In this document: one piece after another, positions 15,125 to 37,036 of the stretch
How the letters are laid out: each line of letters begins with the position of its first letter
Numbering within the stretch: position 1 is the first letter of the stretch
Source of the DNA: Cyanophora paradoxa CCMP329
Taxonomy: Eukaryota; Plantae; Glaucophyta
Reading direction: 5' to 3'
Assembly: GCA_004431415.1 (NCBI GenBank)
Contig: QPMI01000506.1
Span: 1 to 37,261 of the forward strand
DNA length: 37,261 nucleotides
The notes under the pieces: generated by a model
What the model saw: the letters and a program-made list of their open reading frames with translations, nothing else
Databases searched by the model: none
What the model was told of the DNA's origin: nothing
Position numbers and translations under genes: made by a program

Positions 15125-15427
15125 GTGCGTCTTCTAGATCTGCCGATTCATATATATGTGCTCCTGTACATAACTATATATATAGGGTTGCCGTGTCCGT
15201 TTCCCTCTCATGCTTAACCGCTTGCGACCTCTGCTGCATATACATGTGCATCATTTCGAAGCCGTTCGCGCATGTATATATATATATATATATGCATATG
15301 CATGCGATCGCGATCGCGAGCGCCAGCGCTAGCTGCAGCTATAGCTAGCGCTAGCGCTGCATGCATATGCGCACCTGCATATATATGCATATGCATATTT
15401 TTTCGCGCGATCGATCATTAGCTCGGC

Positions 15428-15503
15428 TATCAGGGACTAACGTGTGCAACCCCCCCCCCCGGTATACGTCAATTCAAACTCGGCGGCAAATTTTTGAACA
15501 TGG
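15428..15503 (+). repeat. Left terminal inverted repeat (degenerate)
   Basis: TATCAGGGactaacGTGTGCAaCCCCCCC..TCAATTC..CGGcGGcaaaTtTTTGaAcATGG aligns with the reverse complement of 34468-34536 (TGTCAGGGccttgGTGTGCACCCCCCC..TCAATTC.CGGaGGgATTGTTGtAtATGG). Confidence 0.8.
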
Positions 15504-18500
15504 CGGCACCGGCGGCACCCGCGGCGGGCTCCGTGCCCGCGGGAGAAATCGAACGTGTCGTGATCCACAGGAAGGGCAGCCCGGATGCGCCGCCTGTGCA
15601 TTTCAAGCCGGACATGCTCAACGCCCGCCCCGTTGACGTTGTCCTGCGGCTGCTCAAGACGACTGTGTTTCAGAATCTGGACGCCGAGAACATGGAATTC
15701 GTGCTCGAGAAGCGCCACGACGGCACGTCGGAGGAGCTCGAAGACATCAGCCTCCTGTGCTCCACCTCGGGCTGGAAGACGGGCAAGCAGGGCGTCTACT
15801 ACACGGCAATGGGTGCGCGTGCTCACGCTAACCGCCGCCCGCGCTAACCGCTCGGCGCGCAGACGACCAGCCCGAGGTCGCCGCGCCGGCCGAGCCCGCC
15901 CAACGGGCGGCCACCTTCGGGGTCCGGTTTAGCGGCCGCTCCAGTCAGGGCCTTGCGGACGCGGTCGCGAGCTCGGGGCGCGGTGCGCTCGCAATCGCCG
16001 CCATGTCGATTCAAATTTTGGCGCCCAACTGACATTCAAATTTTGGCGCCACGCGCACAGGCTCGGGCGGGCCCACGATCGTGCGCCCGCATCCTCGCGT
16101 CGCCATGCGATCCTCCTCACGCTATACGCGCAGCCGGAGGGGTTCGACCCCCTCGGCAAGGTGGCCCCTCGCGCCCAGGTGACGACGAATGCGAAGGCCA
16201 AGGCCGCCGCGGCCGCGGTCACTCAGAAAGAGAAGGTCATGGCTGCGGCGGGTGCCGCGGTGAAGAGCGGAAAGGGAATCGAGGCAGTCAAGCCTACGCC
16301 CTTCTCATTCGCGACCTACGCCCCGGCCGCGGACGCGGCCTGGAAGCCTCTCCACGACATGCTCGCGATCCTCGGGAAGAGTTCCGCACCGAGTGCGTCG
16401 CGATCCTCGGCTCGTTGCTTCCGTGATTGCGCGGGTCTTCCTTTCGAACCTGATCGCGCGTCTTCGTCGCAGTACACATCCTGAGCGAGGAGATTTTCGT
16501 GAACTACTTCGACCCGAAGGGCTTCGAGATGGCGCGGAACATCACGAACCGCAGCGCGAACCAGCCGGAGTGGGGGAACACGCTGACTGTTGCCACGGCT
16601 GTCATCACCGAGATCGTGGATCCGAGCAACCCCGCGAAGAAGATGCATGTCGTCCCCCTGGACAACATCGAGAAGATGTGGGTCATGCAGGTTAGCCGCC
16701 TAGCAGCATGCATTGCGTCCTCTTCTTCCCCATCCCACCTCTTCCTTTTTTCCTTCTTTCTCTGTGCTCACTGCATGCTTTTTGAACACCCGCAGGACCC
16801 TGTCAGCATGCAGGACTGGAACCTCTTCGTGAACAAGCACTTGGCCAAACCGACTGGCCAGCACATCATCTTCATGGGCGAACCCACCGCCAAGATTGTC
16901 AGGGACGTGCGTGCATGCCCTTTGATTCCTCTTCTCTGGCCTCTAGAGCACACTGACCGCTTGCTTTCGAGCAGTTCGTAAACAAGAAGGCTGAATTGGC
17001 CGCCCGCCGGAGCCGTGGTGTGGCCGACTTCCAGGAGCCCCGGTACAACGTCGTCTTCAAGCTCGGGACGTCCGGGAAGGATCCAACGACCATCACAATC
17101 GAGATCGAAGGCATGCTTGATCCGCACCCCTACACGCAGCTCGCTGGTCTGTGCTCCTTTCTCCTTTCTTGGCTTGTGCTCCTTTCTGTAAAGGTCCCTC
17201 TTCAGTCTAACCTTAGCACCTGCTCTTCTATCTGCAGATGCATTCTCAGCGTTCATGACGAAGAAGCTGAACGCTGAGGAGCCCCTGGAAGTGTACAAGA
17301 TGTTCGTCCCCAACAAGCCGCCGAAGGGCGCGGGCCGGCGGCCCAACAACTTCCAGGACGCCGTGAATGAAATCACCCCTGACAACTTCCCAGTGTCCAG
17401 TGCGTTGTGCTCTCCTGGCACCCGATGCACCGCGCCCTTCTCTGATGCATGTGCCCCGTGCAGAGCTCACCGAGGTGATGGCCTACGAGGCGAACTGCAA
17501 CTACATCGGTGTGGTGCTCACATCGATGTACTTCGAGCGGGGGTCGCAGCATGCCATCCTGCGGACGATGACTACGCCCGAAAAGGTTCTCAGACTGCCC
17601 TTCCTGCTTAGTTCCCCTCTGTCCACCGAATCTCACTCTGGTGCTGAGCAGAAATACTCCCTCAACCGCAAGGACCCGGAGCGGCTGGTCAATCCCACGT
17701 CGGGCGGCGCCCTCCTGCAGTCGTATGTCAACGGCATTGCAATGTGCCACGCCGCCATGTTCCACAAGATGTGCCCCACCGACGTCCTCAAGCTGCGGGA
17801 CGGCATGACTCGCCCGCTCTCGGTCTGTGACAGCTCAGGCTCCAACCCAACCCTTGCAGGGACTGCCTGACTCTTGCAGCAGCTCCGCATCGAGGATGCC
17901 CATCGGGAGCTCGTGAACCTGGAGCTGCGGCCGTACGTCGTCCCGGAGGACAAGCTCGAGGACGCGATGAAGGATGCCCGCAACGGTACGCCCGTTTCTG
18001 CCCCTCGCCGTCCCCTGTCTCATGCTTCTGGAGCAGGGAAGTCTGCTTTCCTCGTCCATCCTTGCAGTGTTTGCGGCTACAAGCGCATCGGCAACCCGGA
18101 GCACGACGAAATTGTGGAGAAGTTCAGCAGGACCAGCAAGCACGTCTTCGTCTGCGACTGGCTCGGCTACAAGTGCTACCAGGGGCCCTGCTTCGGCGTG
18201 TGCCGGCAGGGGTCCAAGGACTTCTGCCACTGCGAGGAGGAGGACGGGCCCGTGGAGGACGTGGAACACGTGGAGAAAACGCCGGCGCCTCCGAAGCGGG
18301 GCCGGCGGTCCAAGACGGAGAAGGAGGCAGCAGCCCAGGCCCTCCCTGCGGCCCCGCCCCTCCCTGACCCCAAGCTCGGCTCCTCCTCTTCCGATCCCCT
18401 CCCTCTCGACACCCCGGCCGCCTCGAGCTCCCGTCCGGCGGCGGAGGGTTCGCGCAAGCGTGCCCGCACGATGAACTACGCCGTCCTCGCCAGCGGCGGG

Positions 18501-18554
18501 CTCGACCTGGAGGCCGCAAAGGAGAAGGCGCAGCAGGAGAAGGGGCAGCAGTAG
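15500..18554 (+). CDS. Cargo gene A: large orphan multi-exon protein with a Cys/His-rich C-terminal region
   Basis: About 10 GT-AG introns. The junctions checked splice in frame (YYTAM|DDQPE...SSGR|GSGGPTI|PEGFDPLGK...). Contains 'VCDWLGYKCYQGPCFGVCRQGSKDFCHC' and NLS-like 'PKRGRR', 'RKRAR'. Confidence 0.8.
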
Positions 18555-18965
18555 TTGCTCTGAAGTAGCTGCTAGCTCTGCACAGCAGTAGCTGCAGATA
18601 GCCTGTGCTCTTGGTAGGATTTTATTTTCCTTCATGTCCATTCCGAGCTCTCCCGCTGGGCTCGCAACTCTATATATGTATCCATGTGTTTGCTATCTAT
18701 AGTAATGTGCTGTCTATCGCTGTGTATGTATCTATGTCGGCTGTTTATCGCTGTGTATGTATTTGTGTGCAATCTGGATTGATTTCGTATGTGTGCCTGC
18801 GCTCTCCTCTCTGCGTGCCTGGCCATGCATGCATCCCTTCAAGGTTCCCTTCCCAAGTTGACAACAACATCTCGTGTTCAGAGCACGACTCAGCGACACG
18901 TTCACAGAGCTTCACGCGGAACAGGAAGCGCCGCGGGAGGGGAGCGACCCCCGCACGGCTAGCGC

Positions 18966-19571
18966 CTAGCGCCAGCAGTTGCGGCAGCGAGCGCCCTCCT
19001 TGTTGTACTTGGGGTCCGAGGCCCGGAGCGCCTCCTCCGAGCTGAACTCGGGCCAGAGGATCTTCCCCTTCATCTGCGCGCACCGCCTTTAGCTACTGAG
19101 TGCCTCAAAGCCGGGGCACGCGAGCTGTACGCACGCGGAGGGCCGGGCACGTCGGGTTCTGGCCCGAGACCTTGGAGACCTTGTGGATCTTGCCCGTCGA
19201 CGGACTCCCGGTGTACTTCTCGTTCGGTGGAGGAGGAGATGCGTTGCGCCGAGCTTGCGCGCGGCGGGCTGCGGGGGGCGCAGGGCGCTGACCTAGCTCG
19301 GCGCGGATGGCGGTTCAAAACGAGGACGCGCCACGGGCGACGGCGGCCGCGTACCTTCCTCGACTTCCGTCTTTATCGTGCGCACCTCCACCGTGAGCGC
19401 CTCCAGCTGCCGCTGGAGGTCGGCGATGAGCTCGCGTTCGGAGGGAGCGGCGCCCGCAGCGGACGCCGGCTCGGGGGCTGCTGCAGGCCGCCGGAAAGTG
19501 AACTCCTTGCCGCGAAGCGGCCCGGACTCAAAGACGCCGGCCGCGGCAGGTGCCGGGTTGCGCGAGTCCAT
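18966..19571 (-). CDS. Cargo gene C: short coiled coil plus Ada metal-binding-like Zn domain
   Basis: Three exons in frame: MDSRN...LIADLQRQLEALTVEVRTIKTEVEE|GQR...YTGSPSTGKIHKVSKVSGQNPTCPALR|MKGKILWPEFSSEEALRASDPKYNKEGARCRNCWR*. Confidence 0.65.
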
Positions 19572-19575
19572 GGGT

Positions 19576-19591
19576 TTGACGGCGTCGTCAA
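19576..19591. promoter_or_regulatory. Palindromic TTGACG-N4-CGTCAA motif in the 43-bp gap between divergent genes C and B
   Basis: Same motif at 34094-34109, with one-mismatch copies at 22039-22054 and 31319-31334. Confidence 0.55.
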
Positions 19592-19614
19592 GCCAGGGGG
19601 TACGCGTCGTTACC

Positions 19615-21593
19615 ATGCTCCCGGCTGCGGCCGCCGGTGCTCCTGCGCCGCCCGTGGCGGCTGTCGCGGCCGCGCAGTTTGAGCAGCCGGGTGAGCAGCT
19701 CCCCGACCTCATCGTAACAGCCGTGAAGGATATATCGAAGCACGGCGAGAACACCGTGTCACTGGCACCGGCGAAACTAGATGCTTTCATCGCCGAAGTG
19801 GCGGCGATCTTCGACGTTCCCGAATTCGCACGGCCCTTGCTCAAACTCTACGTGGTGCTCTGCGGCGCTGGCCACTGGGTGCCCAACCAGCAGGTCGGCA
19901 GTTCGCCGCCCGTCGATGCTCGCCTGCTTCTGAATGCGCGCAGATATTCGACAAGCACATCCGGCAGGGAAATCTATACTACTTCATCAGCACCAACCCC
20001 TGCGATGTGCCGAAGCTGCTCGCGGAGCAGGCGAAGTCGGCGGAGCAGCTGCACCACAGGCAGCGCGGGCGGGGCATCGGCGCCACGTCCAAGCCAAAGC
20101 GAACCCCGCAGCAGGTTCGGCCCGCGCAGACAGGCGCGCGCGGCATGTTCACTGCTGAACAAAATCGAGCAGCACACAGACCAACTCAACTTGCAGTGGA
20201 TCCAGAAGACCGTGGGCCAGCGGAAACTCTTCCTGGCAACCAAAAAACCAAGCTCTTGCTGGGGAGCGCGACGAAGTTCGTCGCCGAGAAAGCCACGAAA
20301 TGTGCCCAGCAGAGGACGAAGGCTTCCTTGTCCCTCGCCGCAGATCTGTGAGCATTCTGATGGTGAACCCCGTCTGCGCTCCGCTGACTCGTATCTGCAG
20401 GCTTTCGTGTGCCGAGATGTGCAAGCGGGAAGCCGGGGACGTTGTGTTTCCTGACGATAAGATGAACGATATGGAGAGTCTCATGAGCAAGCACGTGGTT
20501 GAGAAACAGCCGATTTCTCTGGCCGAAGCTAAACCGTTCATCGTATTCCTGGTGAATCAACAGTTCAAATCCGAGACTAAATTGCGTGCTCTCTTTATGG
20601 AGAATCTCAAAACCTCCCACAACATCGACAGCGTGGTTTGTGTCCTTCCCTTCACTCTCCTGCCCGCATCCTGATCACGGCTCACAGAAGGCAATTGCCG
20701 GGCTGGAGAGCAGGAGAATGCATCGGACGAGCCAGGGCACGTTTGTGCTTGCGCGTACTAAATTCCGTCGGGTCCGGCTGCAGCTCACGGGTCAGCAGAT
20801 GAGGAGGAGGAGGAGGAAGAGGAGGCTCGTCGCCGCACTCCAGAGGAGCGGGCCCTCCTTCTCAATGCCATGGCGGACAAAGCGTTGGCTGGAGCAGGGC
20901 GGGGCCCTTCCCCGCCTCCTGCCCTGCCTCCTGCCCCGCCTGCTGCTATACCTCCACCCCCCCCTGTGGATCTTCAGAAGGAGGAGGAGGGGGGGGGGGA
21001 AGAGGAGGACGAGGACGAGGACGAGGATGTGGCTCCTGACGGCGTCGAGGCCGATGATGGCACGTGTGAACCCGAAAGACTCCCGTCTGTATCCTAACTT
21101 TCTTCAGAATCGAAGCGATCGAAGGCGGGGGGCAGCAGCAAGGGCCCCAAGGAGAAGAGCACAGGAAGGAAGAAAAGACGAATCACGTGCGTGTAGCCCT
21201 TCCCTTCAATTGTGTGTTCTTTTACACGTGAATGATCGAAATCGCAGCGAGACCGATGAGATCCCGCTGCCTGAAATTCGGGTTGTAGACCAGGCCGGAA
21301 GGAAGAACGTTGTGGACGTTCATTTCCAGATTCCAGCAGGCGTGTGCAAGTTGGAGGAGAAGCAGAGGCATGCAGTCATTTGGAAGCGGGTTCTGGAGAA
21401 CGGGCGCAACACGATTCCACTCAAGCTCGACATGTCGACCAGGATGTGGAAAGAGAAAAAAGCCTTCAACAAGGAAGGAATACAGGTGTGGTCAGCAATA
21501 GTCGAAAGCAACGGCAATGGTGGCCTCGCCATAGTCAAAAAAAGCAAGAACAGCCGGGTCTTAGACACTAACAATCCAGATGCTAAACCCTAG
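19615..21593 (+). CDS. Cargo gene B: orphan multi-exon protein with acidic/Pro-rich linker
   Basis: Coding exons 'QLPDLIVTAVKDISKHGENTVSL...GHWVPNQQ|IFDKHIRQGNLYYF', 'AKPFIVFLVNQQFKSETKLRALF', poly-E/P tracts, and final exon '...VVDVHFQIP...GIQVWSAIV...NPDAKP*'. Confidence 0.7.
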
Positions 21594-21679
21594 CATGTTT
21601 CTTCAGTGCAATGCTTTCTTGTCCTTTCGTAACCACGCGTCCGGGGGTTGAGGGTGTGCAATCATCTCTGTACTCTGTA

Positions 21680-22345
21680 CTCGTGAACATCCAGAGAAAG
21701 AACTACCTTGACCAGAGACTGCAGCTAGCCGAGATGCGAGCAGCTCCAGAGAAAGAACTACCTTGACCAGAGACTGCCTAGCTATAGCCATATGCCTAGC
21801 TGCAGCTCGCGTGAGTGTCCATATGCCTAGCTGCAACTGCGGGACGAGCGCAAGGACTCGATGGGCGCACGGGGCTCAAGAAGAGGGGGAAGCGCGGCCG
21901 ATGCAGACGCGCTTGCGTGCCACGGTGCGCGCTTTCGCCACGCAGCCGTGGGCCCTTCCGCGACTCCGGTGATCGTAATGCTCCCGTCAGGCTTGCCGGA
22001 GGGCGTGCCAAAGCCGCAGCGGGACGCCACCTGCGGTATTGACGCCATCGTAAATGGCCCGTGCGGCGCCGCGGGCGGTGCACGGGCGCTGCGCCGGCGA
22101 TGGGATCGCAGTCTGTGTGCGTACCGTAGGCGGATGCGAGCCTCGGGCGTGCCTATTCGCAGCCCGCCGCGAGGAACAGGTGGTGTTGCCAACTGGCACG
22201 CCCGAGCGAGGCGGCGCGGGATGGGGCTGGGCGGCGCCCAGGTCACTGGCGGCTCGCTCGCGCCGAGCTCGCTGCAGGAGCGCTCGGCGGGCTCCGGGAT
22301 GGCTGAGTCCGGTGTACCGGGAGGTGTTGGGTACGCAGCGAAATG
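21680..22345 (+). repeat. Internal long repeat, copy 1 (leader ending at the ATG of the truncated transposase)
   Basis: Colinear with the reverse complement of 31036-31647. Includes small internal duplications (CCAGAGAAAGAACTACCTTGACCAGAGACTGC twice, 21691-21777). Confidence 0.9.
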
Positions 22346-23117
22346 GCCGCGGGTGGCGCGAGCCCGGCCCAGCCAAGCAGCATCGAGGAGGAGACTCTGC
22401 GCGGCTACGTGGACCAGAGGAAGACGGCCGCTGAGATACTGACTCTGCTAGCCGAGCAGCACGGCATCAACCTCAACAGGCGCGCTCTGCGCTCCAGGCT
22501 CCGCGAGCTTGGCCTCTCAACGAACTACGCTCTCTCTTTCAATGTCCTTTGTGTCGCCGTGCTGGAGGTTGTTAACTTAAATGGCCCCCTTTTCGGCGGC
22601 GGCATGATCCGCACGGCCCTCCGCGCCCAAGGCATCACAGCGTCGAAGTCGAGGATTCGGAAGGCCCTCGCGGTGTTCGATCCGGTGTGGCGCGAGGTCC
22701 GCGGGATCCGCGCGATCCTCCGCGAGCGAGGAATCAAAGCGTCGGAGTCATGGATTCAGCGCGTCGCCAGCGCCGCGGCCATGAAGATAGAGTGCGATCT
22801 GCCATGCTGCACTAGTATATCCCCAGTCTATCCCAATCTGGCTCACGCGTGCCTTGCCGCGGTGTGCAGGTCACACATGCCCGTGCCCTACAACCCAGCT
22901 GTGCAGGGCCGGAAGGAGCTCCGCGATCGCTTCGTCAACTACGCCCGCGCGCGCCCCCGATACAACGGGTCCGCGCCGCTGCAATGCGTTCCGCTGTTCC
23001 GCTGAGGCGCTGCTTGCTCACAGGTACTTCGCATTTGCCTACGGCTGGACCCTCGGTCCCGACCAGCCCGAGAAAATCTACAGACCTATAGATATGTACA
23101 GGTCAATGATGGAGTAG
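22343..23117 (+). pseudogene. Truncated paralog of the IS3EU-like transposase (HTH regions plus first catalytic-Asp strand only)
   Basis: 'IEEETLRGYVDQRKTAAEILTLLAEQHGINLNRRALRSRLRELGLSTNYALS...MIRTALRAQGITASKSRIRKALAVFDP' aligns with the gene at 33961, and 'GWTLGPDQPEK' matches 'GWSVGFDQNEK'. No second D or E motif found downstream. Confidence 0.75.
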
Positions 23118-23351
23118 GTGACTCGTGTGCATGTGCCCTTCGCATCCTTCACTTTGCACGTTCCTTGCTTGTGCCCTTTCATTTGTGTACAATTATTCTT
23201 TAAGCAGCTACTTTTGCTCCTTTGACACGCTGCACAAGCCACAGGGGCCGCCGGGCAAGAAAGGCAATCAATATGGACTTAAAAGCATCTGAACAGAAAA
23301 ACAATGAAGCCTGAGGGGATCTCTCGGAGTTGAAGCCCTACAAAGATCTCA

Positions 23352-24214
23352 TTAAGGGCGTGCATCCAGCATCACACCGATGTAGTCGCAACCCGCTCTG
23401 TAGGCCATGATGTCCTTGAGATCTGCATCGGGCACATTTATCAGCAAAGGCGCGGCACGTCTAGGCGCAGCAAATGGAATGACCACGCACTGTCCTTCGT
23501 GCGCACCCGCACTCCAATTCGTCGCGCATCCTCTTGCCAAGGATCTGCGAGCAGAACTAAGGCACGTGGCATCGCACTGCGAGCTCCGAGCATCGTACTG
23601 CGAAGATCGAGCTCGCCTCCTCGACCTCACGGATTCGGGCGTTCGCATCGGCCCGCGCCTTCTCAGACTTGCTCAGCTCCTCTTTCACCTCGCGGTACCT
23701 GTCGCATACGTCCTGCCGCAGAGCTGAGGCATGCTGAGCGGCCGCATGCGCATCGCACGCGCACCTTTGTCAGTCCCAGATCGACCTCACGGATTCGGGC
23801 GTTCGCATCGGCCAGCGCCTTCTGAGACTTGCTCAGCTCCTCTTTCACCTCGCGGTACCTGTCGCATACGTCCTGCCGCAGAGCTGAGGCATGCTGAGCG
23901 GCCGCATGCGCATCGCACGCGCACCTTTGTCAGTCCCAGAATCTGCGGTCCGACGAATTCGTTCGCTCTCTCCCTGGCCTCCATCTCGGCCACCTTTCGG
24001 TGCAAAGTGTCCACCTCCGCTTGCTTATCGGCAAGCCTCTCGTTGAGGTGCTGTGGGAATTCCGAAGTTCATCAGATAGCTGGTGGCGCCCGCTACCGTC
24101 GCGCGGACCACAAAGGCAACGCACATTCAGACTGTGCTCGACGATCGTCATGACTTTCTCGTTGCAGCAAGGCCGCTCCACTTGCGTGCTGCTGTCCACC
24201 GACGCTCCCGCCAT
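23352..24214 (-). CDS. Cargo gene D: coiled-coil protein with a duplicated exon; 3' part related to gene A
   Basis: 'HLNERLADKQAEVDTLHRKVAEMEARE', two copies of 'DVCDRYREVKEELSKS.KA.ADANARIREV', then 'DLKDIMAYRAGCDYIGVML'. The 3' end is uncertain. Confidence 0.55.
23621..23940. repeat. 160-bp tandem duplication (52-nt intron + 108-nt exon)
   Basis: 23621-23780 and 23781-23940 differ at only two positions seen. Confidence 0.95.
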
Positions 24215-24295
24215 CGTCTTGGGGTAGTGTGAACCCCCGAGCGGCATTCCGCGGCAGAACGCGTTCTTTGAACGTTCGCGACAATCCGCGTCATC

Positions 24296-25587
24296 CGCGG
24301 CAACCGCGGCATTTTGAGTCTATCCGCGGCAACTCCGCGGCAGTTACGTGAGAATTAATTAACCACGAAATTAAAAAAGGGGGGTAGTCCAAATGACGCG
24401 GCATCTTCGCGGCATTCCGCGCTACTAACAAATTCTGCGGCAATTACCGGTAGATGTCGTTAAATCCGGCAGTTGGCGACAGAACGCGGCATCCAAGGCG
24501 TCGTCGCGCTGCTTTCGCGGCTCTCGCCCGAGAATTAATTAACCACGAAATTAAAAAGTGGGGTAGTGTGATTGACGCGGTGTTTCCGCGGCACTCCGCG
24601 CTACTAGCGGCAATTAGCGGTTCTCGCGAGGTTTGTCGGCATTTTGCGGCTCTACAGAACCGCGGCGTCGCTTCGTATGTCCCGATGAGGCGCAGATCAT
24701 GAGCTTCATGATCATGACGCGCGTTTCCTCCGCATCATGATGCAGGCATGTTCAGAGGAACTATATAAGTATTTTAATCATGCTTAGAACGTGTGCGCTT
24801 TTTCCACAGACCACCCTAGCTTCAGTGCTTTATGGCAATTCATGAATTGTCAGTCTGACAGTTCATCCTGTACTTTTCTGTTCGACACATGTGTCTGTGG
24901 TCTGCATGCACAATCCGCCTCCTCCTAAACATGATTAAAATATTTATAGAGTACCTCTGGACATGCAGGCATCATGACGCGGGAGAAAACGCGCCTCATG
25001 ATCATGAAGCTCACGATCCGCGCCAGATGGCAAGCCAGAATTGACGCCGCGATTCGTATTTGCCGCGAACAACCGCAATGTACCGCGATTGTCAAATCAT
25101 GCCGCGGTTAGGGAAAACTGCCGCGAAGTTGCCGCGTTATTTGGACTACCCCCCTTTTTTATTTCGTGGTTAATTAATTCTTGGGAAACCGTCGCGTAGA
25201 AAACGCGATTCCATCGCGGATGCCGCATTTTGACGCTAACTACCGAATTTGACGACGTGTGGCAGTAATTGCCGCTAGTAGCGCGGAGTGCCGCGGAAAC
25301 ACCGCGTCAATCACACTACCCCCACTTTTTAATTTCGTGGTTAATTAATTCTCGGGCGAGAGCCGCGAAAGCAGCGCGACGACGCCTTGGATGCCGCGTT
25401 CTGTCGCCAACTGCCGGATTTAACGACATCTACCGGTAATTGCCGCAGAATTTGTTAGTAGCGCGGAATGCCGCGAAGATGCCGCGTCATTTGGACTACC
25501 CCCCTTTTTTAATTTCGTGGTTAATTAATTCTCACGTAACTGCCGCGGAGTTGCCGCGGATAGACTCAAAATGCCGCGGTTGCCGCG
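24296..25587. repeat. 1.3-kb palindrome/foldback built from ~180-bp units
   Basis: 24296-24616 is a near-perfect inverted copy of 25266-25587. Inner imperfect arms at ~24690-24812 and ~24893-25023. The core GAATTAATTAACCACGAAAT(T)AAAAA..GGGGTAGT occurs 5 times. Confidence 0.95.
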
Positions 25588-25852
25588 ACACGTCGCGCGC
25601 TCACTCGCGTCACATTTCTTCCCATCCCATCAAGAGCCGCGCTCTTTCTTTTGCCATCGCATCCCGCTTCGACGCACAGTGCATGCGGTGTCGCGTTGGC
25701 GCGTGCGCAGCCGCAGGCCAGTCTGCCATCCCAGAGCTAGCTGCTGGCATGAGAGAGACTGGGTTCATTTGGATGGGAGAAGAAACAGAACCGGAAAAGA
25801 GAGAAAAGGAGGTCTACAACGCCAGGATAGCGCGTGAGATACGAGAAGAGAG

Positions 25853-26767
25853 CTAGCGAGCCAGCACGCTCCAGTACAGCTGCCCGTACGGGACGAAGAT
25901 CTCCATCCCTGCTTGAGGACGCAGTCGGCGACTAGCCAGACCTGCCCGTCCTTCTCCACGCGGAAGAAGGCGTTGTTCGAGAAGCGGGGTGAGTCCCGGG
26001 CTTATCCGCGTCATTTGCGAAGCGCGCTAGGCTCGCCTCCGGAAAGTCGGTGGCGTCGAGGACGTACGTGTGCCCGTACTTGCCTTTGAACGAGATGCTG
26101 TAGAGGCGACGCGAGGGCTCGCGAGCGAAAATCTCCAGCGCTTGAGTCTTCGTGTAGATCGTCCCGCGGTACGGGGTGATGAGGTCACCTGGTCTGAAAA
26201 CAACTGCACCACGGCGCACGCCCGGCCGCTCCACGAAGAGGCCGGTCCCGGCGCGCCAGATGCCCGACTGCTTCGGCAGAAGCCAGCCCGCGCGGCGATC
26301 GATGCCGATGGCAGCGGTGGTGCGCGGCAGACGGCCTCGCCGCGGGGTCTGCGGCAAACTTTACTCGCAGCGATACTGGCGGCACGAGCGGCAGTCGAAC
26401 GAGCGCACGCTCACACCACGCGTCCTTGCCGTTACCTGCCGGCAGCGAGTGCAGCTGGCAGTTAGCGCACAGGCGACCCACTGGCGGCGCAGCGCACTCA
26501 GCGCACATACCAGTTCAGTACCTCCGGCCGAAGCGAGACGACGCAGCTGCCTATACATTTTGCTTCGGAACTGCCCACCAGCTCGAGATCCCAGCGCTGG
26601 GGCTTCGGTACCGGTACCCCCTGCCGGAGCACCCGCCGTCCCGTTCTCCTGCTGTGAGCTCAACGGCAAGGCTTCTGCTCAGCTCCTACCGCGGTGCTAG
26701 CCCTCTTGTGCTAAATCACGCCCGCACGCCCCGCGCAATCTTCGGGAATTCCCGCGCTGACGCCCAT
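25853..26767 (-). CDS. SET-domain lysine methyltransferase (compact, virus-like architecture)
   Basis: 'KQSGIWRAGTGLF...FRPGDLITPYRG...YVLDATD...SLARFANDA...NNAFF...VWLVA...LKQGMEIFVPYGQLYW'. Two single-base losses in C/G runs must be restored. The 5' exon structure is uncertain. Confidence 0.88.
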
Positions 26768-26812
26768 TTGGGCAGCCGTCAATACACATAGGCGGCCTTC
26801 GGCACGGCAGAC

Positions 26813-28808
26813 ATGTCAGCGCCGGCCGAGGAACGGAAGCGGAGGCCGCGTACAGACGCGCAGACAAGCGAGCCGGGCGCGGGAAAGGCCGCGCGCAGGA
26901 ATCGTGCTGCCCGGATGCCGGCGGCCAACCGAGCTGGGGGCTAGCCAACGGCTTTTACGATCTGGATCCCGATACAGGATTGCCCGTCGGCGTGCGGCAC
27001 CTGGAGCAGACATGCATGATCCTCGGCGTGAAGGACACGTTCAGCAAGCAGGTGTACGATCCCTTGACGGGGCAGCAAGTCAAGCGCAACACCCAGCTTT
27101 ACACAGATAGCTCGAAGCGTGTCGTTCACGTCTGCGAGATCTGCAGGATCCTCCTTTGGATCGGGGCTATCGCTGGCCGCGCGTGCGCCCGCCGCGGTAA
27201 CTCGTGCGCGGTGTTCGCTGACTCTGCCTGCAGGTGTGCTATCTCGGAATCGGTGTATTATGGGGAAAACGGAGTATGCGGGCCTCCTGTGATCACGCAT
27301 ATGCACACATGCGTGCAAATGCTCGCGCAAGTGCAAGCCGTTTACATGCACGTGTACAAGGACGCACCACGCGAGACGCTGAGAGATTTCCTGGTCGGCT
27401 CGCTGCCGACGCCTTCAAGAAGGATCCGCCGCTGCGCCTGGCCGCAGCGCTCGTTGCTGTCCTCCCGCTGCAGCCCCCCGCGGCAGATGCCGCGGCAGAT
27501 GGGGTTGTTTCCCCCCCGCTCCTCCTCCTTTGCCGCACCTCCTCCCCGCCTCTCCTTTGCCCTCCCCGCCTCTCCCTTTGCCCCTCCCTCCGCCTCTCCC
27601 TTCGCCCTCCCCCGCCTCCTTCCGTTCCTCCCCAGCCCTCCTGCCACCCCTCCTGCCTCCACTCCCCGTCCCCGCCCGCCTGCCGTCGCCGTCTCGCCCT
27701 TTCTCGGAGGATTAGGCCTGCCCGAGCAGCAGCTCTACGCTCTGTGGGCATGTCGATTCCTGTGGTCGACGTCGAGATCGAAAATCCTACACCGGCCACA
27801 ACCGATAGGAATGAATGGGATGAAGGGGAGGAATGCATAGCTTCCGACCAGAAGCCGGGTATGCTGCAGAATGCACAGTTGATGGCAATTGACTGACAGT
27901 TCCATGCCAGGTCGTCAGGAACTGAAGCCGATGAAGATCAGCGACGCCAAGAAACCAGTACGAGAGTATGTGCGGAATGTCATTGATGACTTGGCGATGA
28001 TCCCGAAGACGGCAAGATTCCACTTACTACCTCTCAAGTGCAGACAGGTAAACGTACAGTTCTTCGTTCTGTCTCAGATCAATGGTTTTGACCGACTTCT
28101 TCCGTGTGTGTCTGTGCCTCAGGCATCTATCTTCTCATGCTTGTCAGCAGTCAATGGAGAAACCCGCTGTGGCATGTGGAGAGCCCGTGCCCTTCGGCCT
28201 CCTCGACAACACGGCCTACATTCATCTGCTGGTCGACTTAGCTCGACAGGGCAAGCATGTGCTCTTTTGCTTCAACACAAATCACAGGACACCCACAGGG
28301 CGTGAGGTTGGACACTGGTGTGCCGTGCAGACTGCTTCCGTAGATCGATGTCTGATGCAACACACAGGATTCTCGGCTACCTCGCAAAGAAGGACGTCAG
28401 ACTGTCTGCACCTTCGCCGATTCAATGAATTGGACGAAAACATTGGGTAAGGTTGCAGATATGCTCCACTCCCATAGAGTAAGTGTGCTGGGAACATCTA
28501 CGACCACGCTGTTCAGTTTAATTGCGTCGATGTGAGTTCTTTTCTAGAGTATCTGTATTGTCTTTCTGATGCACTTTGCTCCAGTGCGGTGTGTGGATCT
28601 GGGCTGCTGTGTACACGCTCATGTTCCCACATGTAGCGATAGCCAGCTCAACGTGCAGGCTGCTCTCCGCTCACAGCTGCTCACAAGTAAACCAGATGGA
28701 AGTGCGAATGAGTGCTGGATCAGGCAGTGGAGGGAACGGATCCGCAAGCTAGCTCTTGTAGTTTGTGACCCTGCCCGGGATGACGAGGATCTCAAGCTTG
28801 AGCCCTGA
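26813..28808 (+). CDS. Ulp1/SENP-type (clan CE, C48-like) cysteine protease with N-terminal Cys/His region
   Basis: 'HVLFCFNTNH...VGHW' (His at 28313), 'TFADSMNW' (Asp at 28419), 'AVQFNCVD|CGVWIW' (Cys at 28585, after an intron), C-terminal 'IRQWRERIRKL'. Confidence 0.8.
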
Positions 28809-28854
28809 ATCAAAATATTTACATTGTGCGCACAGATGCATACAAAGCCTGCGA

Positions 28855-31038
28855 TTATCTTCTCATGCTCGCTACGGCACGTTCTACAGTGCGCTGCCTG
28901 TGCTGGGCAATCTTCGCGAGGGCGCGCCTGGCGTTGTTTCGCCTCGCGCACTCTCTTTGTGCCGACAGTGGGGGCGGCGCTGACGCGCGCTGCTGTGAGC
29001 CGCTTCCGCTGTTCCACGCCTCCTTCTGCTTCAGCTGCTCTTCGTTCTCTTCGTTCTCTGACTCCTGCTCCTCCTCTTCCGCTCCTGCTCCTCCTCTCCT
29101 CTTCCTCCTCCTCTTCCTCCTCCTCTTCCTCCTGCTCTCCTGTGCACGCCGCGTTGCTTGCCGCCGCTCATCCTTTGCACGCCGCATCGCTTGCCGCCGC
29201 TCCTCCTTCCTCTCTCTTCTTCTCCTTGACTCCGAGCACTCAAGGCCTAAAAGGCATGTGTTAGGAATGCGATGCATGAACATCCAGTATCCAGAGGCAC
29301 GCACAGTACCACTTGCCCTCGGGTATGGTGGCATCCGAAAAACCAGCACATTCGACGTGCCACGCCCTGCCGCACGCCTCCCATCGCAGATGAGGAGTTC
29401 GCCATTCAGAGAGGGATCATCCTCCGATCCGGCCAAATGGCATTTCTGGCAGCAGCAGGCGAGGCCTACACAAAACGTTAGCGAGGTCTTGAATCGCGAA
29501 TGTAATGCAAAGGACACACAGAGATATTCCATCATTTTGAATCCATTCTCGACCACGAAGTTCACACATTCAGGGTGGTAGGCGTTCATGCATCTCTCCC
29601 TGACGTGCTTTCGCTTGATGCACGCCTCTTCCGACCGCCGCAGCCGCCCGGCTCGTGCTGGCAGATGGATTCCTTGTTGTGGCAGCACAAGTAGGGGTGG
29701 CTGTGGTAGTTGGGAAGTTTTCGCCGCAGACGAGGCAACGATAAGTCATCGCCGTCCAGGCTGCCTGCGGTAGTCTGGAGGGGGAGAGGGGTGCTTGAGA
29801 CTGAGAACCTGCGCCCGCATCTACTGCCTCCGCAATGATTAAAGCCTCCGTTGCCTGAAGGCGACGTCATCGTGGAAGTGCTGGTTGCACTCCTTGAACT
29901 CAGCCTCGGAGATGGTCTTCACTCTCTCACCGCTGAGCCTTGCCACAGTGCGGATATCCATGCGACTGTAAAGAGATCAGAAAGGGTACTGTCACAGGGG
30001 GTGGGTGGGGGGGGGCGGATTAGTATGTACCACTCAGGACAGGACGCCTCCCGTGCTTCAGCAGGTCCATGATGCAGGATTCATGGAACTTGTGGGAACA
30101 GATCTTCCCTCGCTGTCGGCCACCGTCACAGGGAGCCCTCTCTCAGGATCCTGGACTGAGCTCAAACAGACTGAGCAGGTTGCATTGATCCCGATCAGAA
30201 GATCAACAGCCTCTTGTCCTCCTTCGAAATTGATGCACGTGCTCTGCACGTTCACGACTGTCAGCAAAAACATCTGCTATGCAGCAGCATCTGCAGACCT
30301 CAGCTCCTGTATAGCGCCTCGGACAAGTCCATAGCCGCCATCTCGGCTAACTCCTCCTCCGTGGGGGGCAGAGAACTTCTTCAGCAGGAGCGGGCGTGGG
30401 CGGCACAGGATCGACCTAGGGGCGCCGCACGACTGTAAGAGATTGGTACAACTGTTGTGCAGCAGCAGAGCACGCACTCGACTGGAACGAAGAACAGGAA
30501 CACGGGCACACGGCCAGGCACATCCGGCGACGCAGCCGGCGCGGGTGGCGCCGCTCCTCAGCCTTGTTTTCAGTTAGCTCTGATTCATTCCTGTACAGGT
30601 ATCATCAGCGCGGATGGCGACGGATCGCGGGCAACGCACGTCGCAGTGACCGTTGCACTAAGGGCGATCGGCTCCGGCGACGGGCGAGGGGGAGTGCGGA
30701 GCGCAATCGTGCACGTCAACGGTCGCTTTCTGAGGCGGGCTGCAGCTGATGGCGGTGGCTGGCGCTGGCTGCTGGCTGGCGTCGACGTCTTGGTCGGCGG
30801 GCTGCGCAGCGAACAGCTGTCTGCAGGTGCTGTCCTCAACAGCTGTCTTAGCTATGAGGTCCTCGGGTGGCGCCGGCGGCTGCGGCTTCGGTCCTTCAAA
30901 GCCGCCGTTTGCCCAGTCAGCAATCGCTTCCGCGTGACGGTACTTGATCCAGTGGTTACGCTCGGCTATATAGCTTTCACGGCGCGCCTTTTGGGGTGTG
31001 TTGAGCTGCGCCGGCGAGGCCAGACGCGGCGTGCGCAT
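28855..31038 (-). CDS. RING-H2 + tandem PHD finger protein (putative chromatin-reading E3 ubiquitin ligase)
   Basis: RING 'CSVCL...KICSHKFHESCIMDLLKHGEASCPEC|R' at ~30177-29965. PHD-like 'CLVCGE...CMNAYHPEC'. Canonical PHD 'CQKC...ELLICDGEACGRAWHVECAGFSDATIPEGKWY|CLEC' at ~29455-29235. Charged tail. Several 1-bp homopolymer frameshifts. Confidence 0.85.
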
Positions 31039-31647
31039 TTTCGATGTGTACCCAATTCTCCGGGTACACGGACTCAGCCATCCGGAGCCCGCCGAGCGCT
31101 CCTGCAGCGAGCTCGGCGCGAGCGAGCCGCCAGTGACCTGGGCGCCGCCCAGCCCGCCCCGCGCGCCTCGCTCGGCGTGCCAGTTGGCAACACCACCTGT
31201 TCCTCGCGCGGGCTGCGAATAGGCACGCCCGAGGCTCGCATCCGCCTACGGTACACACACAGACTGCGATCCCATCGCCGGCGCAGCGCCGTGCACCGCC
31301 GCGGCGCCGCACGGGCCATTTACGATGGCGTCAATACGCAGGTGGCGTCCCGCTGCGGCTTCGGCGCGCGCTCCGGCAAGCCTGGCGGGAGCATTACGAT
31401 CGCCGGAGTCGCGGAAGGCCCACGGCTGCGTGGCGAAAGCGCGCACGCAAGCGCGTCTGCATCGGCCGCGCTTCCCCTCTTCTTGAGCCCCGTGCGCCCC
31501 ATCGAGTCCTTGCGCTCGTCCCGCACCTGCAGGCATTTGGAAACTCACTCGAGCTGCAGGTATTGTCGGGAGCTGCTCGCATCTAGGCTGGCTGCAGCCG
31601 AGGTGAAGCTTGAAGGTAGTTCTGTCTCTGGATGTTCATCCCGAGCT
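31036..31647 (-). repeat. Internal long repeat, copy 2 (leader ending at the ATG of the RING-PHD gene)
   Basis: Inverted homologue of 21680-22345. Similarity stops at the start codon in both copies. Confidence 0.9.
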
Positions 31648-31791
31648 CTAGGCCTAGGTCAATGTCACTTTGCTGTATGTGGATGTTTCCATTTCCTTTC
31701 CCGCCCAGTGCGAGCAGGAGAGAGCGTTTCATTAGACATAGCCAGAGCTAGCTATATCAAGCTAGGGCTAGAGGGCCGCTAGAGGGCTAGC

Positions 31792-33961
31792 CTAGCGGGC
31801 CGGGGGCGCGCACGAGGGGATCGAAATTGTGCACATAATAAAGAAAGCTGCACGCATTTCCTGGGGCTCCAGCAGGTACTCGTCCGGTGGGAAGAAGCCA
31901 TCCCTGCATTGACCGGGCACGGGGCGCGTCGTTGTTGGCGGTGCGTCGTGCACCACTGCATCCAGCCGGGATGGACACATCGTACAGGTGCAGGTCGGAA
32001 AGCTGCTCGTTCAGCTGCAGCATGAACAAGAAGAGCCGGGGGAGCCCTCCAAGGGGGTTGCTGGAGTACTGCTCCGCAATGCGTCCACGTACCCCGGAGC
32101 TTCCTCATCATACTCCCGCCGAAGTTGACCACATGCTTCCAGATCTCCTTCAAGTCCTCATTGCATTCCTTGAACATCTCGTCCCGCAGCATCCTGAGCG
32201 TGAGGAAGCTTGATAAACAATGAAGGGAGTGCCGGGGCAGGTAATTTCACACCGGAGAGTCGTGCGGGGTTCGTCAAAGACGACGAAGTCGGCTCAACGG
32301 GTCCTTCATGCGGCTGTCAAGGACCGAGCCGTTGACAGAGCCGCCCTCTGGTTGTGGATATCCTTCATTTCCGTCCACTCTGGCAGGTTGAACATCAGAG
32401 GCCGCATGTAGTTCATGTTCTCGCGCCTGCACCCGGGCCCAGTGAGCTGGGACAGCACAATTTAAAGAACAGGGAACAGGTGCCGCAGTGCATACCACCA
32501 GTCTGGCCTGCCGTTCTGCCCCCCGTCTCCTTGGAGCCTGAATTCACGTGGTGGTTCAGCTGTTCTTCGCGATGGCGAGGCCGTACTCCATCACGTACAT
32601 GGTCGCCTTCGCCATGGCAAACAGCTGTTGAGGTCGAGTCTGAATGCAAGCGGAGAATAATAAGCATGCATGCCAAGTGAATTCGAATGCACGCATGCAA
32701 ATTAAGAGCTCTTAATTTGGCAAGTCTCAGCAGAAGTAACTGATTGTAGCCTTCCAACATGTACATAGGATGGCCATCATGGTCTGTAGCTGTCATCGAC
32801 TGGCGGGTCGCACGAAGGGCACCTGTTGTACCACTCGAGCATCTCCAGCATCACAGCCGCATCCACGATGGGCTTCGTGACCTTGACATTCACCCACCTG
32901 CCATGGAGTGTTACCGGAGAGAGCAAATACAGAAGGAATGCGTGGGGGAGAGGGCGTGTCCATCACCTCAATTCTTCTCGACCTTCGGGTTCGGTAGGAT
33001 GGGCCACCATGACGGCGTCGCGCAGGTCGTTGGGATCTTCGAAGTTGAGCCTCCGCCAGGGAAGGCCGGTGGTGGGGTCCGTGATGTTGCCCTTCGCAAT
33101 TTCCTCGTCGATCAGCCGCTCGTTTCCTCCAGCACGAGCGCCTTTCGGTGGCCGCGCCCGGGGTCAGGTGCGGCGCAGGTGAGCAAGAGGAGTGGGAGGG
33201 AGCACACGTGGGCTGTCCAGGTCAGCCGGTTCTCTGCGCCGCAGTCCGAGGAGACCGTGTCGAAGACCCCGAACTCCTCACGACCGACCTGCAGCTCTGG
33301 GGTCACGGAGCACGCAGCTGCGAGGCGTGTGCCCCTCGCGCGCACTTGTACAGTTTGTAGCCTTGTATAGTGGAGCGAGCAAGCCCGCAATGCAGTCCAG
33401 GATGAATGTGGACGTATTCTCCACGGCCGCGAAGATGTAGACGTTCGTGTACGGCACCGCCTTCTCGTTCTGGTCGAAACCGACACTCCAGCCGAAGAAC
33501 TTCCTGCGCACAAGGCGTGCGTCAGCGCGGCGCGGCGGTGCGGCACGGGCGGCGTGGCGGCGCGGACCCGTAGAAGGTCGAGCGGTGGATGGACCTGCGC
33601 TTTTTCGCGAACTCGCCCAGGCGAACGTTGCGTCCCGTCGGATCCAGCTCCGCGAGGGCGTGCTGAATCCTAGACTTCGCCACAGTGATGCCCGCGGCCC
33701 TGAGCGCCCGCGGATCGCGTCGTAGCCGTATCCGTCGCCGCACAAAGTCGCCGCTTCTTCTACGACATCGTAAACTGCCTCCTTTGAGAGAGAGTAGTCC
33801 GTCGAGAGGTCGAGGTCGCTGAGCTTGTAGCGCAGGGCGCGCATCGAAATCTGGATTTGGTGCTCCTCGTGCAGCAGAGCCACGATCTCCCTCGCCTTTC
33901 TCTTCTGAGCCACATACTCCTCCAGAATCTCCGGGTCGATGTAAATCTCGAAGCCGCTCAT
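31792..33961 (-). CDS. IS3EU-like DDE transposase (integrase-core family), multi-exon
   Basis: N-terminal HTH-like 'ISMRALRYKLSDLDL', 'GYGYDAI.RALRAAGITVAKSRIQHALAELDP'. Catalytic core D 'WSVGFDQNEK...YIFAAVENTSTFIL', D 'FGVFDTVSSDCGAEN', E 'PSY.NPKVEKN(W)', then 'KNS(W)NHH'. These parallel the family pattern WHxDG..K / xxDxGxEN / SxxNxxIERxW / WNxH. The 3' end is approximate. Confidence 0.85.
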
Positions 33962-34093
33962 TGCGAGGCGAACCGCAATGAGCGCCCGCAGCTCCGTGCA
34001 CTAGGCTATCGCTGTTTTGGCCGCTGGGGCGGCTCTCCGGCGGTCTGCGCCGGCTGTTCCCGCGGTCGAAAAATTCACTGCACCCCCCCTCCC

Positions 34094-34109
34094 TTGACGC
34101 TGTCGTCAA
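34094..34109. promoter_or_regulatory. TTGACG-N4-CGTCAA motif about 130 bp upstream of the transposase ATG
   Basis: Exact match to the motif at 19576-19591. Confidence 0.55.
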
Positions 34110-34467
34110 AACCGAGTGCTGGGCCGCGTCGGGCGCGCGCAGCATCTTCAGCGACCTAGCATCGCATCCGTGGTAGGTTTGAGCGCTGCCGCATGCATCT
34201 GAGTGCCCGAGCTGGCGCCCGCACGCTCGACGGGCGCGCGTCCAGGGCAGCGCGCGCGCAGCCCGCCCGGCCACACGAACCACTTGTATGTATGATACAA
34301 AGACCTCTTACGCTACTAGCTCGCCGGCGCCGCGCCCGGGCTCCTGTTCACTATGCCAGGATCGGCTGCCAGGGACTGCCTGCCTGGCCGCTGCCATGCC
34401 CGGTGCATGTGCTACGTATTTGTTCCACCAAGGAGCGCCCGCTCGCCGCCCCTGCCTTGCACCATGA

Positions 34468-34536
34468 CCATATACAACAATCCCTCCGGGAATTGAAGCA
34501 AATGCTCCTGGGGGGGTGCACACCAAGGCCCTGACA
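34468..34536 (-). repeat. Right terminal inverted repeat (degenerate), followed by TSD CTCGGC at 34537-34542
   Basis: Ends ...GGGGGGGTGCACACCAAGGCCCTGACA|CTCGGC and matches the left TIR in blocks. Confidence 0.8.
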
Positions 34537-34634
34537 CTCGGCGGCTTTCGCGCAATCTTTTATATGAAATAAGATCCTAATTATAAGCTCGAATCTTGAC
34601 CCCGTAGCTGGTCGCGCCGCGCCCCCGCGCGCAG

Positions 34635-37036
34635 TGAACCGTGTGTCGGCGGGGCGTTCGGCGCGGACGCGGGGAGGGCGTCCTGTGCTTCGTCGCCTCC
34701 CCGAAGGACGGGTCCCTCATCGCCGCGTCGGCGACCCGTCCGCCGCGAATTCGAAGGACTCCCACCTCGTCAAGGTGCACTTTGCGCGGTCGCTCAAGGC
34801 TGCCGCATGTGCACGCGGGCGGCCGCTGACTCGCGCCACGCCCGGCTCCGCGATCGATATCGCTTGCGATCGCAGCTCAGCGCGCCGACATGGACGACGG
34901 TGGCGGCGACGTCGCGGGAGCTCGGCCTGACGCAGGCGGAGGTCGAGGGCGGCCCAAGGTCCTCCAGAAGGGCGCCATGAACTGCACCATCGACGCCGCA
35001 GGTGCGCATAATTGAATAGAATATAAATATATATTGTACATGTGCTCGCGCTCGAGCAGCTCTTGACGGCGCGTGCGCTGCAGGCAGTACGCGTACTTCG
35101 CGAGCTCGCGGGAGGTGATTCAGGTCGACGCCGCCACGCTCGCGACGACCGCCACCTACCAGCTCGATCCGGACAGGGCCTACGGCGTCGTTGCGATCCA
35201 CGCCGCCGGCAATCATGTGCGTCTGGCCCCTCGCATTGACAATTCATATTAATAATTTGCGAACTGTATCACAGGTTTACGTCGTCGCTTCCCGCCGAAG
35301 CGCAGTGAGCATGAGCGGCGACAGCCCCGTCGGTCGTGTCGATCGCCTCAATACTGCGGCGGTCTCGCCCGACCTCGGGGGCCATGAAGCGGGACCTGCG
35401 TGCCGTGGCCATGCGCCTCGCCGTCAACCAGTCGGTCGATCTCCCCGCGACCCTCGGCCGCCGCGCGCGTCGGTCCTGGCGCCCACGGCGGGCCTCCTCT
35501 TCGTGGCCGGCGACGGCCTCGGGCGCGGGTGCTCCGCCTCGACGACATCACCGTCCACGCCGACGCGCCGCGGATCACGGAGGGCAGCGCCGCGATGGAG
35601 GGCCCGTACAGCGGGGCCGTCGTGGAGAAGGACGGGCGCCTCTACGTCCTCTCCCTCCCAACCCGCCCCGACCCCGACGCCGTCCCAAGCCCTAGCCGAG
35701 CCCGTCCCCTTCCGCGACGCCGAGCCGACTCCGGCTCCCGTTTGCAATCCCTGCATGTTCAGACGGCCTTGCTCGCGGCCGCGGGGGCGCCGGCGCTCGC
35801 GAGGAGCACGGGCGGTCGCTGCTCTCCTTGCCGAGCTGCGGCAATTGCGCGGGCGGACAGCTACCTGCGGGGCAGTCGTGCACGCAGTGCTCTGCTCCTG
35901 CTCCTTATTGCCCACCCGGGGTAATTGGCTGCGGCCCTCCTCCCATGAGAATTCGCCGCTCTAGATCTCTCCTTTCGGACGCTGCGGGCGCGCACGCCCT
36001 CCTCACGCTCTTCCACTTCGGAGTTTCTGGTAGCTCGTGCGCTTATGCATATATATGTTTACGATTGTTTTCGTTTCTTTCCATTCATGTGCATGATACC
36101 CCGGTATCGTGCTGTTTGCAGCGTGACGATCTCGCGCAATGACACGTATCGCGCTGAGCTCTCGGTGCGCCGAATCGCACTTTTGTTAATAAAAAACAAG
36201 TCCGACGTGCACATCAACATGTTAATGCTTGATGTCGCTGCGCAGCCTCCTCTCCGTCCTCCTCGAGCCTGCCCTTCCTCTTCTTCCCCTGCGCCTCCGT
36301 CATCCCGGCGCCAACGCCGCCCCGACTGACGCGCGCGCCTACGCCATCGTCCCCTCGGAAGGCGGCCACGGTGCTTTGCACGCGTTTCTCGGTTTCACTT
36401 GCGGAATTCGAAGGACGCTCATCGCTGACCAGCGGCCGCTTGCGCATAGCGATCGCGGCCTTCTCGCTGTATCCCTCGCTGAGCAAGGTCGGACCGCCAG
36501 CTCGATCAACGGCAACCTCTCGAAGGTCCTGCAGGTGCGACTCGCAATTCGCTTCAGCAACGCTGGCGCCATCTCCGGTTTTTCCGGCTCTCAAATTCGA
36601 CTGCCCTTCAGGTGGTCCGCGCGGGCCGAACAGCGCCACCGTCTTCATGGGGTCCCGGGGGTGCCGACCCCACGCCGTCGCCCAGCCCGAGCCCGTCGCG
36701 TCTGCGACCCGAGCCCGACCCCGTCTGCGACGCCGAGCCCGTCGCCGACGCCGATCCCGTTGACGACGCCGAGGCCTTGCACACTCTCAGAGTCTGCTTT
36801 GAAAACAAACGCCACTCTAGATCTCGAGCTCGATCTTTGTCAGCGGCATTCCCATGTGCGCGAACTGCGTTGCCAACGCCCTGGCGGATGGAGCAGCGTG
36901 CGAGCAGTGCTACCAATGCGTTTCTTGCAACACCCCTTGTCGGAAACGTGCACTGCTTGAGGAGAAGAACGTTAACGCGTCGACGGCTGCGGTAACGATC
37001 GCAAACCGACGCACAGGCGCTATTGGCGGAAGGTGA
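34635..37036 (+). CDS. Downstream exons of the host surface/secreted protein (beta-strand-rich repeats, P/S/T stalks, Cys-rich modules)
   Basis: 'QYAYFASSREVIQVDAATLATTATYQL', 'VYVVAS', 'GLLFVAGDG', 'DGRLYVLS', PSPTPSATPSPSPTP tracts, and CxxC-rich ends ('CANCVAN...CEQCYQCVSCNTPC'). Frameshifts are present and the exon structure is approximate. Confidence 0.55.

Follow-up and report, generated by a model that had tools for sequence, protein, structure and literature searches.

Structure and boundaries of the element

The stretch analysed here (the window, 37,261 nt of Cyanophora paradoxa DNA) contains at 15428-34536 a 19.1-kb unit that carries nine spliced genes, G1 to G9, including a DDE transposase near its right end, and that is, with high confidence, a transposon (Table 1). 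The unit is enclosed by the perfect 6-bp target-site duplication (TSD) CTCGGC, which a sequence-only reading of the window had reported together with the transposase; both were confirmed. The left terminus, TATCAGGG, begins at 15428 and the right terminus, CCCTGACA, occupies 34529-34536, which gives the element TA..CA rather than TA..TA ends. In an end-anchored alignment of the terminal inverted repeats (TIRs) seven of the eight terminal bases match; the two ends agree well for about 28 bp and in patches from there to about 60-70 bp. The inverted similarity of about 70 bp claimed earlier is thus real but imperfect. A scan of 13001-15600 versus 33961-37200 (2.6 kb x 3.2 kb of flank) for inverted ends framed by a direct repeat of 6 bp ranked the CTCGGC/15428/34536 pair top. 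Its score was matched by 3 of 150 shuffles, so that the pair on its own is only moderately significant. GC content is 0.60 within the element and 0.75 in the host genes at 1-13000.

The count of nine genes was obtained by reading both strands; database gene models run G3 and G4 together in all but one of five copies, which makes the count eight or nine and agrees with the roughly nine first proposed. The genes are tightly packed. The divergent pairs G2/G3 and G6/G7 have 43 and 45 nt between start codons (values that depend on start choice), and the convergent G7/G8 pair has 46 nt between stops, close to the gaps of about 45 bp noted before in three gene pairs. The earlier reading did not mention the numerous 1-bp frame breaks, the internal palindrome, the inverted duplicated leader or the transposase paralogue listed in Table 1.

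Table 1. Features of the C. paradoxa element in window coordinates
Feature	Position	Strand	Basis or remark
Left TSD, CTCGGC	15422-15427	+	Directly outside left end
Left TIR, imperfect, starts TA	15428-15490	+	End-anchored alignment
G1, about 11 introns, C-terminal Cys/His cluster (PHD-like by eye)	15500-18554	+	Sequence
G2, small three-exon protein, coiled stretch, C-terminal Cys/His cluster	18966-19571	-	Sequence
Perfect dyad TTGACG-N4-CGTCAA	19576-19591		In 43-nt gap between divergent G2/G3 starts
G3, multi-exon, acidic and proline-rich tracts	19615-21593	+	Near-identical models on five contigs
G4 leader, inverted duplicate (about 92%) of G8 leader	21684-22343	+	One-mismatch dyad at 22039
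G4, paralogue of transposase N-terminal helix-turn-helix (HTH), without catalytic core	22343-23117	+	Clr5 above Pfam cut-off
G5, spliced coiled-coil protein	23352-24214	-	Sequence
Palindrome, 1.29 kb	about 24296-25587		320-bp arms, 99.7% complementary, weaker symmetry toward centre
G6, SET-domain-like, motif-level	25853-26767	-	Motifs by eye; this copy carries frame breaks
G7, Ulp1/C48-like cysteine protease, motif-level	26813-28808	+	Motifs by eye
G8, RING-H2 finger, one well-supported and one likely PHD finger, acidic tail	28855-31038	-	Pfam, PDB
G8 leader	31039-31638	-	One-mismatch dyad at 31319
G9, DDE transposase, Clr5-like HTH and PF24764 core	31790-33961	-	About ten 1-bp frame breaks here
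Perfect dyad TTGACG-N4-CGTCAA	34094-34109		133-148 nt upstream of transposase start
Right TIR, imperfect, terminates CA	34478-34536	-	End-anchored alignment
Right TSD, CTCGGC	34537-34542	+	Directly outside right end

Copies in the genome and linkage of cargo to transposase

A search with the transposase open reading frame returned only gene models of C. paradoxa. The model g15925 of contig tig00020921 tiles the window exactly, and the window is therefore this contig. Transposase models lie on tig00020921, tig00020553, tig00020927, tig00001049, tig00000113 and tig00000743, with one identical sequence under a further accession, and they are identical across all tiled stretches; models of G3, or of G3 and G4 joined, lie on tig00020921, tig00001049, tig00000215, tig00020689 and tig00000912. 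Element gene models thus occur on at least nine named contigs including this one. They tile the six frames of the window exactly over 93-100% of their length (62% for g3882, P0003), and the interruptions in the tiling are frame changes, not substitutions. These near-identical models point to a young, multi-copy element that has been recently amplified.

Linkage between cargo and transposase was found on four other contigs. The G3/transposase pair is g15925/g15929 here and g6672/g6676 on tig00001049, four gene numbers apart in both, and the G3 and G4 model of tig00000215 lies six accessions from an identical transposase, whose contig we infer. On tig00020553, g10609 fuses the 3' part of the transposase with G8 and adjoins g10610. 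On tig00000743, g3882 links exon 1 of the transposase, via unrelated sequence, to the antisense of 15666-15472; it is collinear with an internally deleted copy in which homology ends 44 bp short of the left end. Residues 146-271 of g3882 have no match in the window, and this deleted copy therefore contains other DNA. The cargo therefore moves together with the transposase, as the test set beforehand had asked; this is shown for G3, G4, G8 and the left end. The copies on tig00020553 and tig00000113 lie mid-contig, judged by gene-number ranges, and so are not contig-end overlaps. The copies are near-identical and sit inside different gene-rich contigs, and none of the refuting conditions set beforehand that could be checked went against the transposon reading.

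Transposase and its lineage

The transposase model P0006 matches PF24764 at 27.2 bits (cut-off 26) and Clr5 weakly. Its catalytic residues D142, D200 and E268 (P0006 numbering), encoded near 33475, 33246 and 32979, align with those of relatives; the protein lacks an HHCC motif and has an HTH at its N-terminus. An AlphaFold model (predicted local distance difference test score, pLDDT, 68) matches the integrases of foamy virus, Rous sarcoma virus and human immunodeficiency virus as well as Mu and TnsB; a PDB sequence search gave no match. A profile search returned 49 matches, all of them element pieces or members of the same family as far as checked, and PF24764 is present in 20 of 24 aligned proteins. 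Some of these show motifs known from the curated cores of IS3EU/GingerRoot (PMC10045372, Data S3); others share a variant that follows the first aspartate in Cyanophora and that was seen, by eye, in none of the 14 curated IS3EU cores. A tree, calculated without IS3/IS481/Ginger outgroups or the curated references, splits into two groups (100/99), with Cyanophora on a long branch in the variant group. By sequence, the transposase probably belongs to the IS3EU/GingerRoot lineage, apparently in a sister subclade of the curated set. The earlier designation "IS3EU-like" is therefore right. Strict membership is unproven by phylogeny and fails on the rule that complete IS3EU families always have TA..TA ends (PMC10045372).

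The members of the variant group are themselves transposons, at three anchovy loci and one chytrid locus. The anchovy elements are 9.0-9.7 kb long with 240-bp inverted ends, AA..TT termini and a 6-bp TSD in two of three copies, and carry a convergent second gene with a RING finger at its end; they may represent an undescribed family. One anchovy copy (L006) differs by an additional insertion and by a deletion. The chytrid element (9643-13840 of locus L004) measures 4.2 kb and has TATGG..CCATA ends, a 26-bp inverted repeat, a 7-bp direct repeat and two convergent genes, its ends matching the pattern given for rust-fungus IS3EU. These relatives share with the Cyanophora element the transposase subclade and inverted ends and, in two of three anchovy copies, the TSD length, but they differ in size (4.2-9.7 kb), in their perfect 240- or 26-bp TIRs and in the number of genes called, which is two or three. 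Their proteins showed no similarity to those of the Cyanophora cargo.

Closer transposase relatives are encoded on the environmental contigs L001, L002 (ERR10034898) and L003, which are too short to show cargo; L001 is 61-74% identical in pieces and has similar intron positions. C. paradoxa also has a second, diverged transposase family (tig00001343_g8330, 42% identity over 117 residues).

Repeats and a shared dyad

A 16-bp dyad lies upstream of five element genes, namely G2, G3, G4, G8 and the transposase, an occurrence equalled by none of 100 shuffles for a motif that was picked after inspection; the two one-mismatch dyads upstream of G4 and G8 represent one duplicated site. G1, G6 and G7 are preceded by half-sites at distances of 33, 10 and 36 nt, respectively, and the host flanks contain no full dyad save one two-mismatch site at 7107. 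G4 and G8 also have in common, up to the first codons, an inverted duplicated leader of about 600 bp that apparently bears an intron. Together with 65% nucleotide identity over 322 bp between G4 and the HTH region of the transposase, this makes G4 look like a chimera of the G8 leader and the 5' end of the transposase.

The arms of the palindrome between G5 and G6, in the region 24220-25587, are made of 171-bp units holding an AT-rich core and dyad half-sites. No flanking duplication was seen around it, and a degenerate unit of the same type abuts the G5 start; for these reasons its reading as a nested foldback element or miniature inverted-repeat transposable element is not established, and it may be either such a foldback or an amplified regulatory array.

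Cargo genes

Spliced genes were searched exon by exon, with database gene models as the full-length queries. In these searches Pfam, PHROG and NCBIfam were uninformative for G1, G2, G3, G5, G6 and G7, and Rfam gave no match. The RING (E 5e-4) and PHD (E 7e-4) matches of G8 in Pfam are both below cut-off, and its PHD pieces match PDB PHD chains (best E 3.5e-4); one PHD finger is well supported and the second is likely. By eye, the SET motifs of G6 are correctly ordered. PDB gave six matches for it, each to SETD8/KMT5A, but at E of about 1; a single-sequence structure prediction of a G6 piece reached a pLDDT of 35, and a search of plasmids for relatives of this piece was uninformative. The candidate catalytic residues of G7 (His, Asp, oxyanion Gln and Cys) are spread across four exons and stand in the order and context seen in C48 proteases; an intron at 28532-28584 divides the Cys motif. 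Since exons were searched separately, the SET and Ulp1 calls stay at motif level. Among the remaining genes, the G1 exon at 17430-17518 is 76% identical to an exon of G5, and G5 contains a 160-bp tandem duplication (98%, 23621-23940) covering an intron and an exon.

Alternative explanations

Several observations weigh against a recently amplified transposon with its own gene set. For a family this young the ends are degenerate, and the TSD and termini were read in this single copy; metagenome and viral scans returned no genomic DNA of other C. paradoxa copies, and no empty site was seen. The locus on tig00020927 may be that of the window itself. G1, G2, G3 and G5 match no family in profile searches, and the SET and Ulp1 calls are without a significant profile match. 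The genes of this copy, moreover, carry frame breaks. These fall mostly at short homopolymer runs and differ among contigs, 1-bp losses of this kind also distinguish one copy of the duplicated leader from the other, and the assembly is a PacBio one (PMC6704402), for which reasons they are probably long-read consensus errors rather than decay. Three other origins can be set against the transposon reading. A block of host genes with a small transposon might have been segmentally duplicated, or assembled several times, and be framed by a chance TSD; the assembly does contain 34.7 Mb of duplicate features (PMC6704402), shuffles did equal the score of the ends, and overlapping contigs might account for g15929 and g15931 as a single locus. 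This origin is quite improbable given that element parts occur on at least nine contigs, in some of them mid-contig, that GC content steps between element and host genes, that homology runs to 44 bp from the predicted left end, that G4 derives from the transposase, and that transposase and cargo promoters have a dyad in common.

SET, RING and Ulp1-like genes occur in giant viruses too, and four cargo genes have no family match, so a Polinton-like virus or a giant-virus remnant using an integrase (6-bp TSD, inverted ends, 14-40 kb) has to be considered; size and TSD length fit Polintons and Polinton-like viruses, and endogenized giant-virus regions are present in C. paradoxa (PMC12344493). Such an origin is nevertheless highly improbable. 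The sequence-only reading had seen no capsid or polymerase gene, and exon-wise searches of Pfam, PHROG and NCBIfam likewise gave no match to a polymerase, packaging ATPase or capsid, although divergent capsids could escape such searches; IMG/VR holds no relatives of the transposase, G3/G4, a G1 exon or G6; the element genes are intron-dense; and the transposase, a PF24764-type enzyme, fits the IS3EU/GingerRoot block in the published alignment. Passive pick-up of host gene fragments as neutral baggage, as in a Pack-type element, would accord with the gene fragments of GingerRoot elements (PMC6839031), with an interior whose internal duplications and g3882 derivative show it to be rearranging, and with the divergence of the cargo domains. 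It is an improbable account of genes that appear whole, with starts, stops and introns, and are packed 43-46 bp apart; a sequence search found no relatives of G3 outside the element and no host parent, the four catalytic positions of G7 appear to be present, and five genes share an upstream dyad. Against these three alternatives, a transposon with accessory genes of its own is the probable explanation.

Proposed role of the cargo

Cut-and-paste insertion with a 6-bp stagger is the mechanism of this transposase family, and the HTH region of the Cyanophora enzyme would accordingly bind the imperfect ends, the unit being excised and inserted with such a stagger. The analysis shows a delimited unit, present in several copies, whose genes move along with a DDE enzyme, and the eight other genes are probably long-standing accessory genes that travel with it. 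C. paradoxa silences repeats by CpG methylation (32% overall; PMC12344493), and other DNA transposons are known to carry SET and TET genes as passengers (PMC12730594). On these grounds it is tempting to suggest that the accessory genes keep the element expressed despite host silencing: judged by their domains, the PHD fingers would read histone marks, the SET-like protein would write them, and the RING protein and Ulp1-like protease would act on ubiquitin and SUMO. G4, a DNA-binding region without a core, probably modulates transposition or expression, and the common dyad probably co-regulates the element genes. For the cargo genes as accessory regulators the balance is about even; element-specific genes that counter host silencing, rather than Starship-type host cargo, are the most likely interpretation.

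A more far-reaching and rather speculative possibility is that the element is a self-regulating anti-silencing unit, its dyad regulon read by an element factor (perhaps G4), and the prototype of an algal lineage of giant IS3EU-like elements, at which the second C. paradoxa transposase family and the metagenomic relatives hint. Under such a regulon the genes are predicted to supply jointly histone reading, methylation, ubiquitination and deSUMOylation, and the element would be switched on. Whether accessory genes of a transposon defeat host silencing can be tested directly in this young family with its fixed chromatin and ubiquitin/SUMO genes, since the alga is culturable and its methylome has been published.

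Comparison with known mobile elements

The element resembles IS3EU (PMC10045372) in its 6-bp TSD, inverted ends, integrase-like DDE core without HHCC and N-terminal HTH, as well as in the spacing and context of the three acidic residues, and departs from it in its TA..CA ends, the motif at the first aspartate (different from the 14 curated cores), its 19.1-kb length, its nine genes and its glaucophyte host. With GingerRoot (PMC6839031) it shares transposase lineage and TSD length, and GingerRoot elements, which occasionally have TG..CA ends, also reach 3.9-12.9 kb and hold extra coding DNA; unlike the Cyanophora element, with its short imperfect ends and apparently whole, element-specific genes, they have TIRs of 100-150 bp and only host gene fragments. 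Contrary to the earlier statement that IS3EU elements typically carry one or two genes, richer members have been described: TET-carrying IS3EU of rust fungi have three genes (PMC12730594) and Styx, at 7.9 kb, has four coding sequences and copies with broken transposases that are still mobilised in trans (PMC10853768). Both combine an IS3EU transposase and a 6-bp TSD with additional whole genes, and the rust-fungus elements include a chromatin-modifying gene that has been suggested to help them evade silencing (PMC12730594). They differ in gene number (three or four versus nine) and in kind, with TET and alpha-kinase genes in place of SET-like, Ulp1-like and RING/PHD genes.

HarbingerS, SET-carrying MuDR and KDZ elements (PMC12730594) are likewise DNA transposons with chromatin-modifying accessory genes, but with unrelated transposases and other TSD lengths; the KDZ group is recognised by a KDZ transposase and, for Zisupton, an 8-bp TSD, whereas the element here has a PF24764 transposase and a 6-bp TSD. 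Starships are large multi-gene mobile units. Their first gene encodes a tyrosine recombinase (DUF3435), their size is far greater, and their cargo varies and benefits the host, in contrast to the DDE enzyme and fixed regulatory-type cargo seen here; no Pfam match to the Starship recombinase was found in the scanned pieces of G1. Of the analogy drawn earlier with Starship and KDZ elements, the likeness to KDZ or HarbingerS holds up better, while captured host genes of the Starship type do not fit. Judged by defining genes, the element is neither a Polinton nor a Starship nor a KDZ element, and it would work in the manner of IS3EU.

Since multi-gene IS3EU elements have already been described, the novelty of the Cyanophora element is one of degree. 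It is larger and gene-richer than the known multi-gene members, about 1.5 to 2.4 times the length of the described lineage members whose sizes were found, and possesses a transposase paralogue that lacks the core as well as a dyad shared among its promoters; literature searches, which did not extend to Repbase, found no description of it. The IS3EU/GingerRoot lineage is thereby extended to glaucophytes, to 19 kb and to nine genes, where the largest sizes found were 12.9 kb (GingerRoot) and 7.9 kb (Styx). For annotation, this also means that dozens of Cyanophora "genes" are transposon parts.

The sequence left of the insertion (13050-15420) has 56% GC and many short palindromes and TA runs, without long repeats. 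To the right of the element, 34660-37261 holds a spliced host gene on the + strand whose product has Pro-Ser/Pro-Asp repeats and a small cluster of Cys residues.

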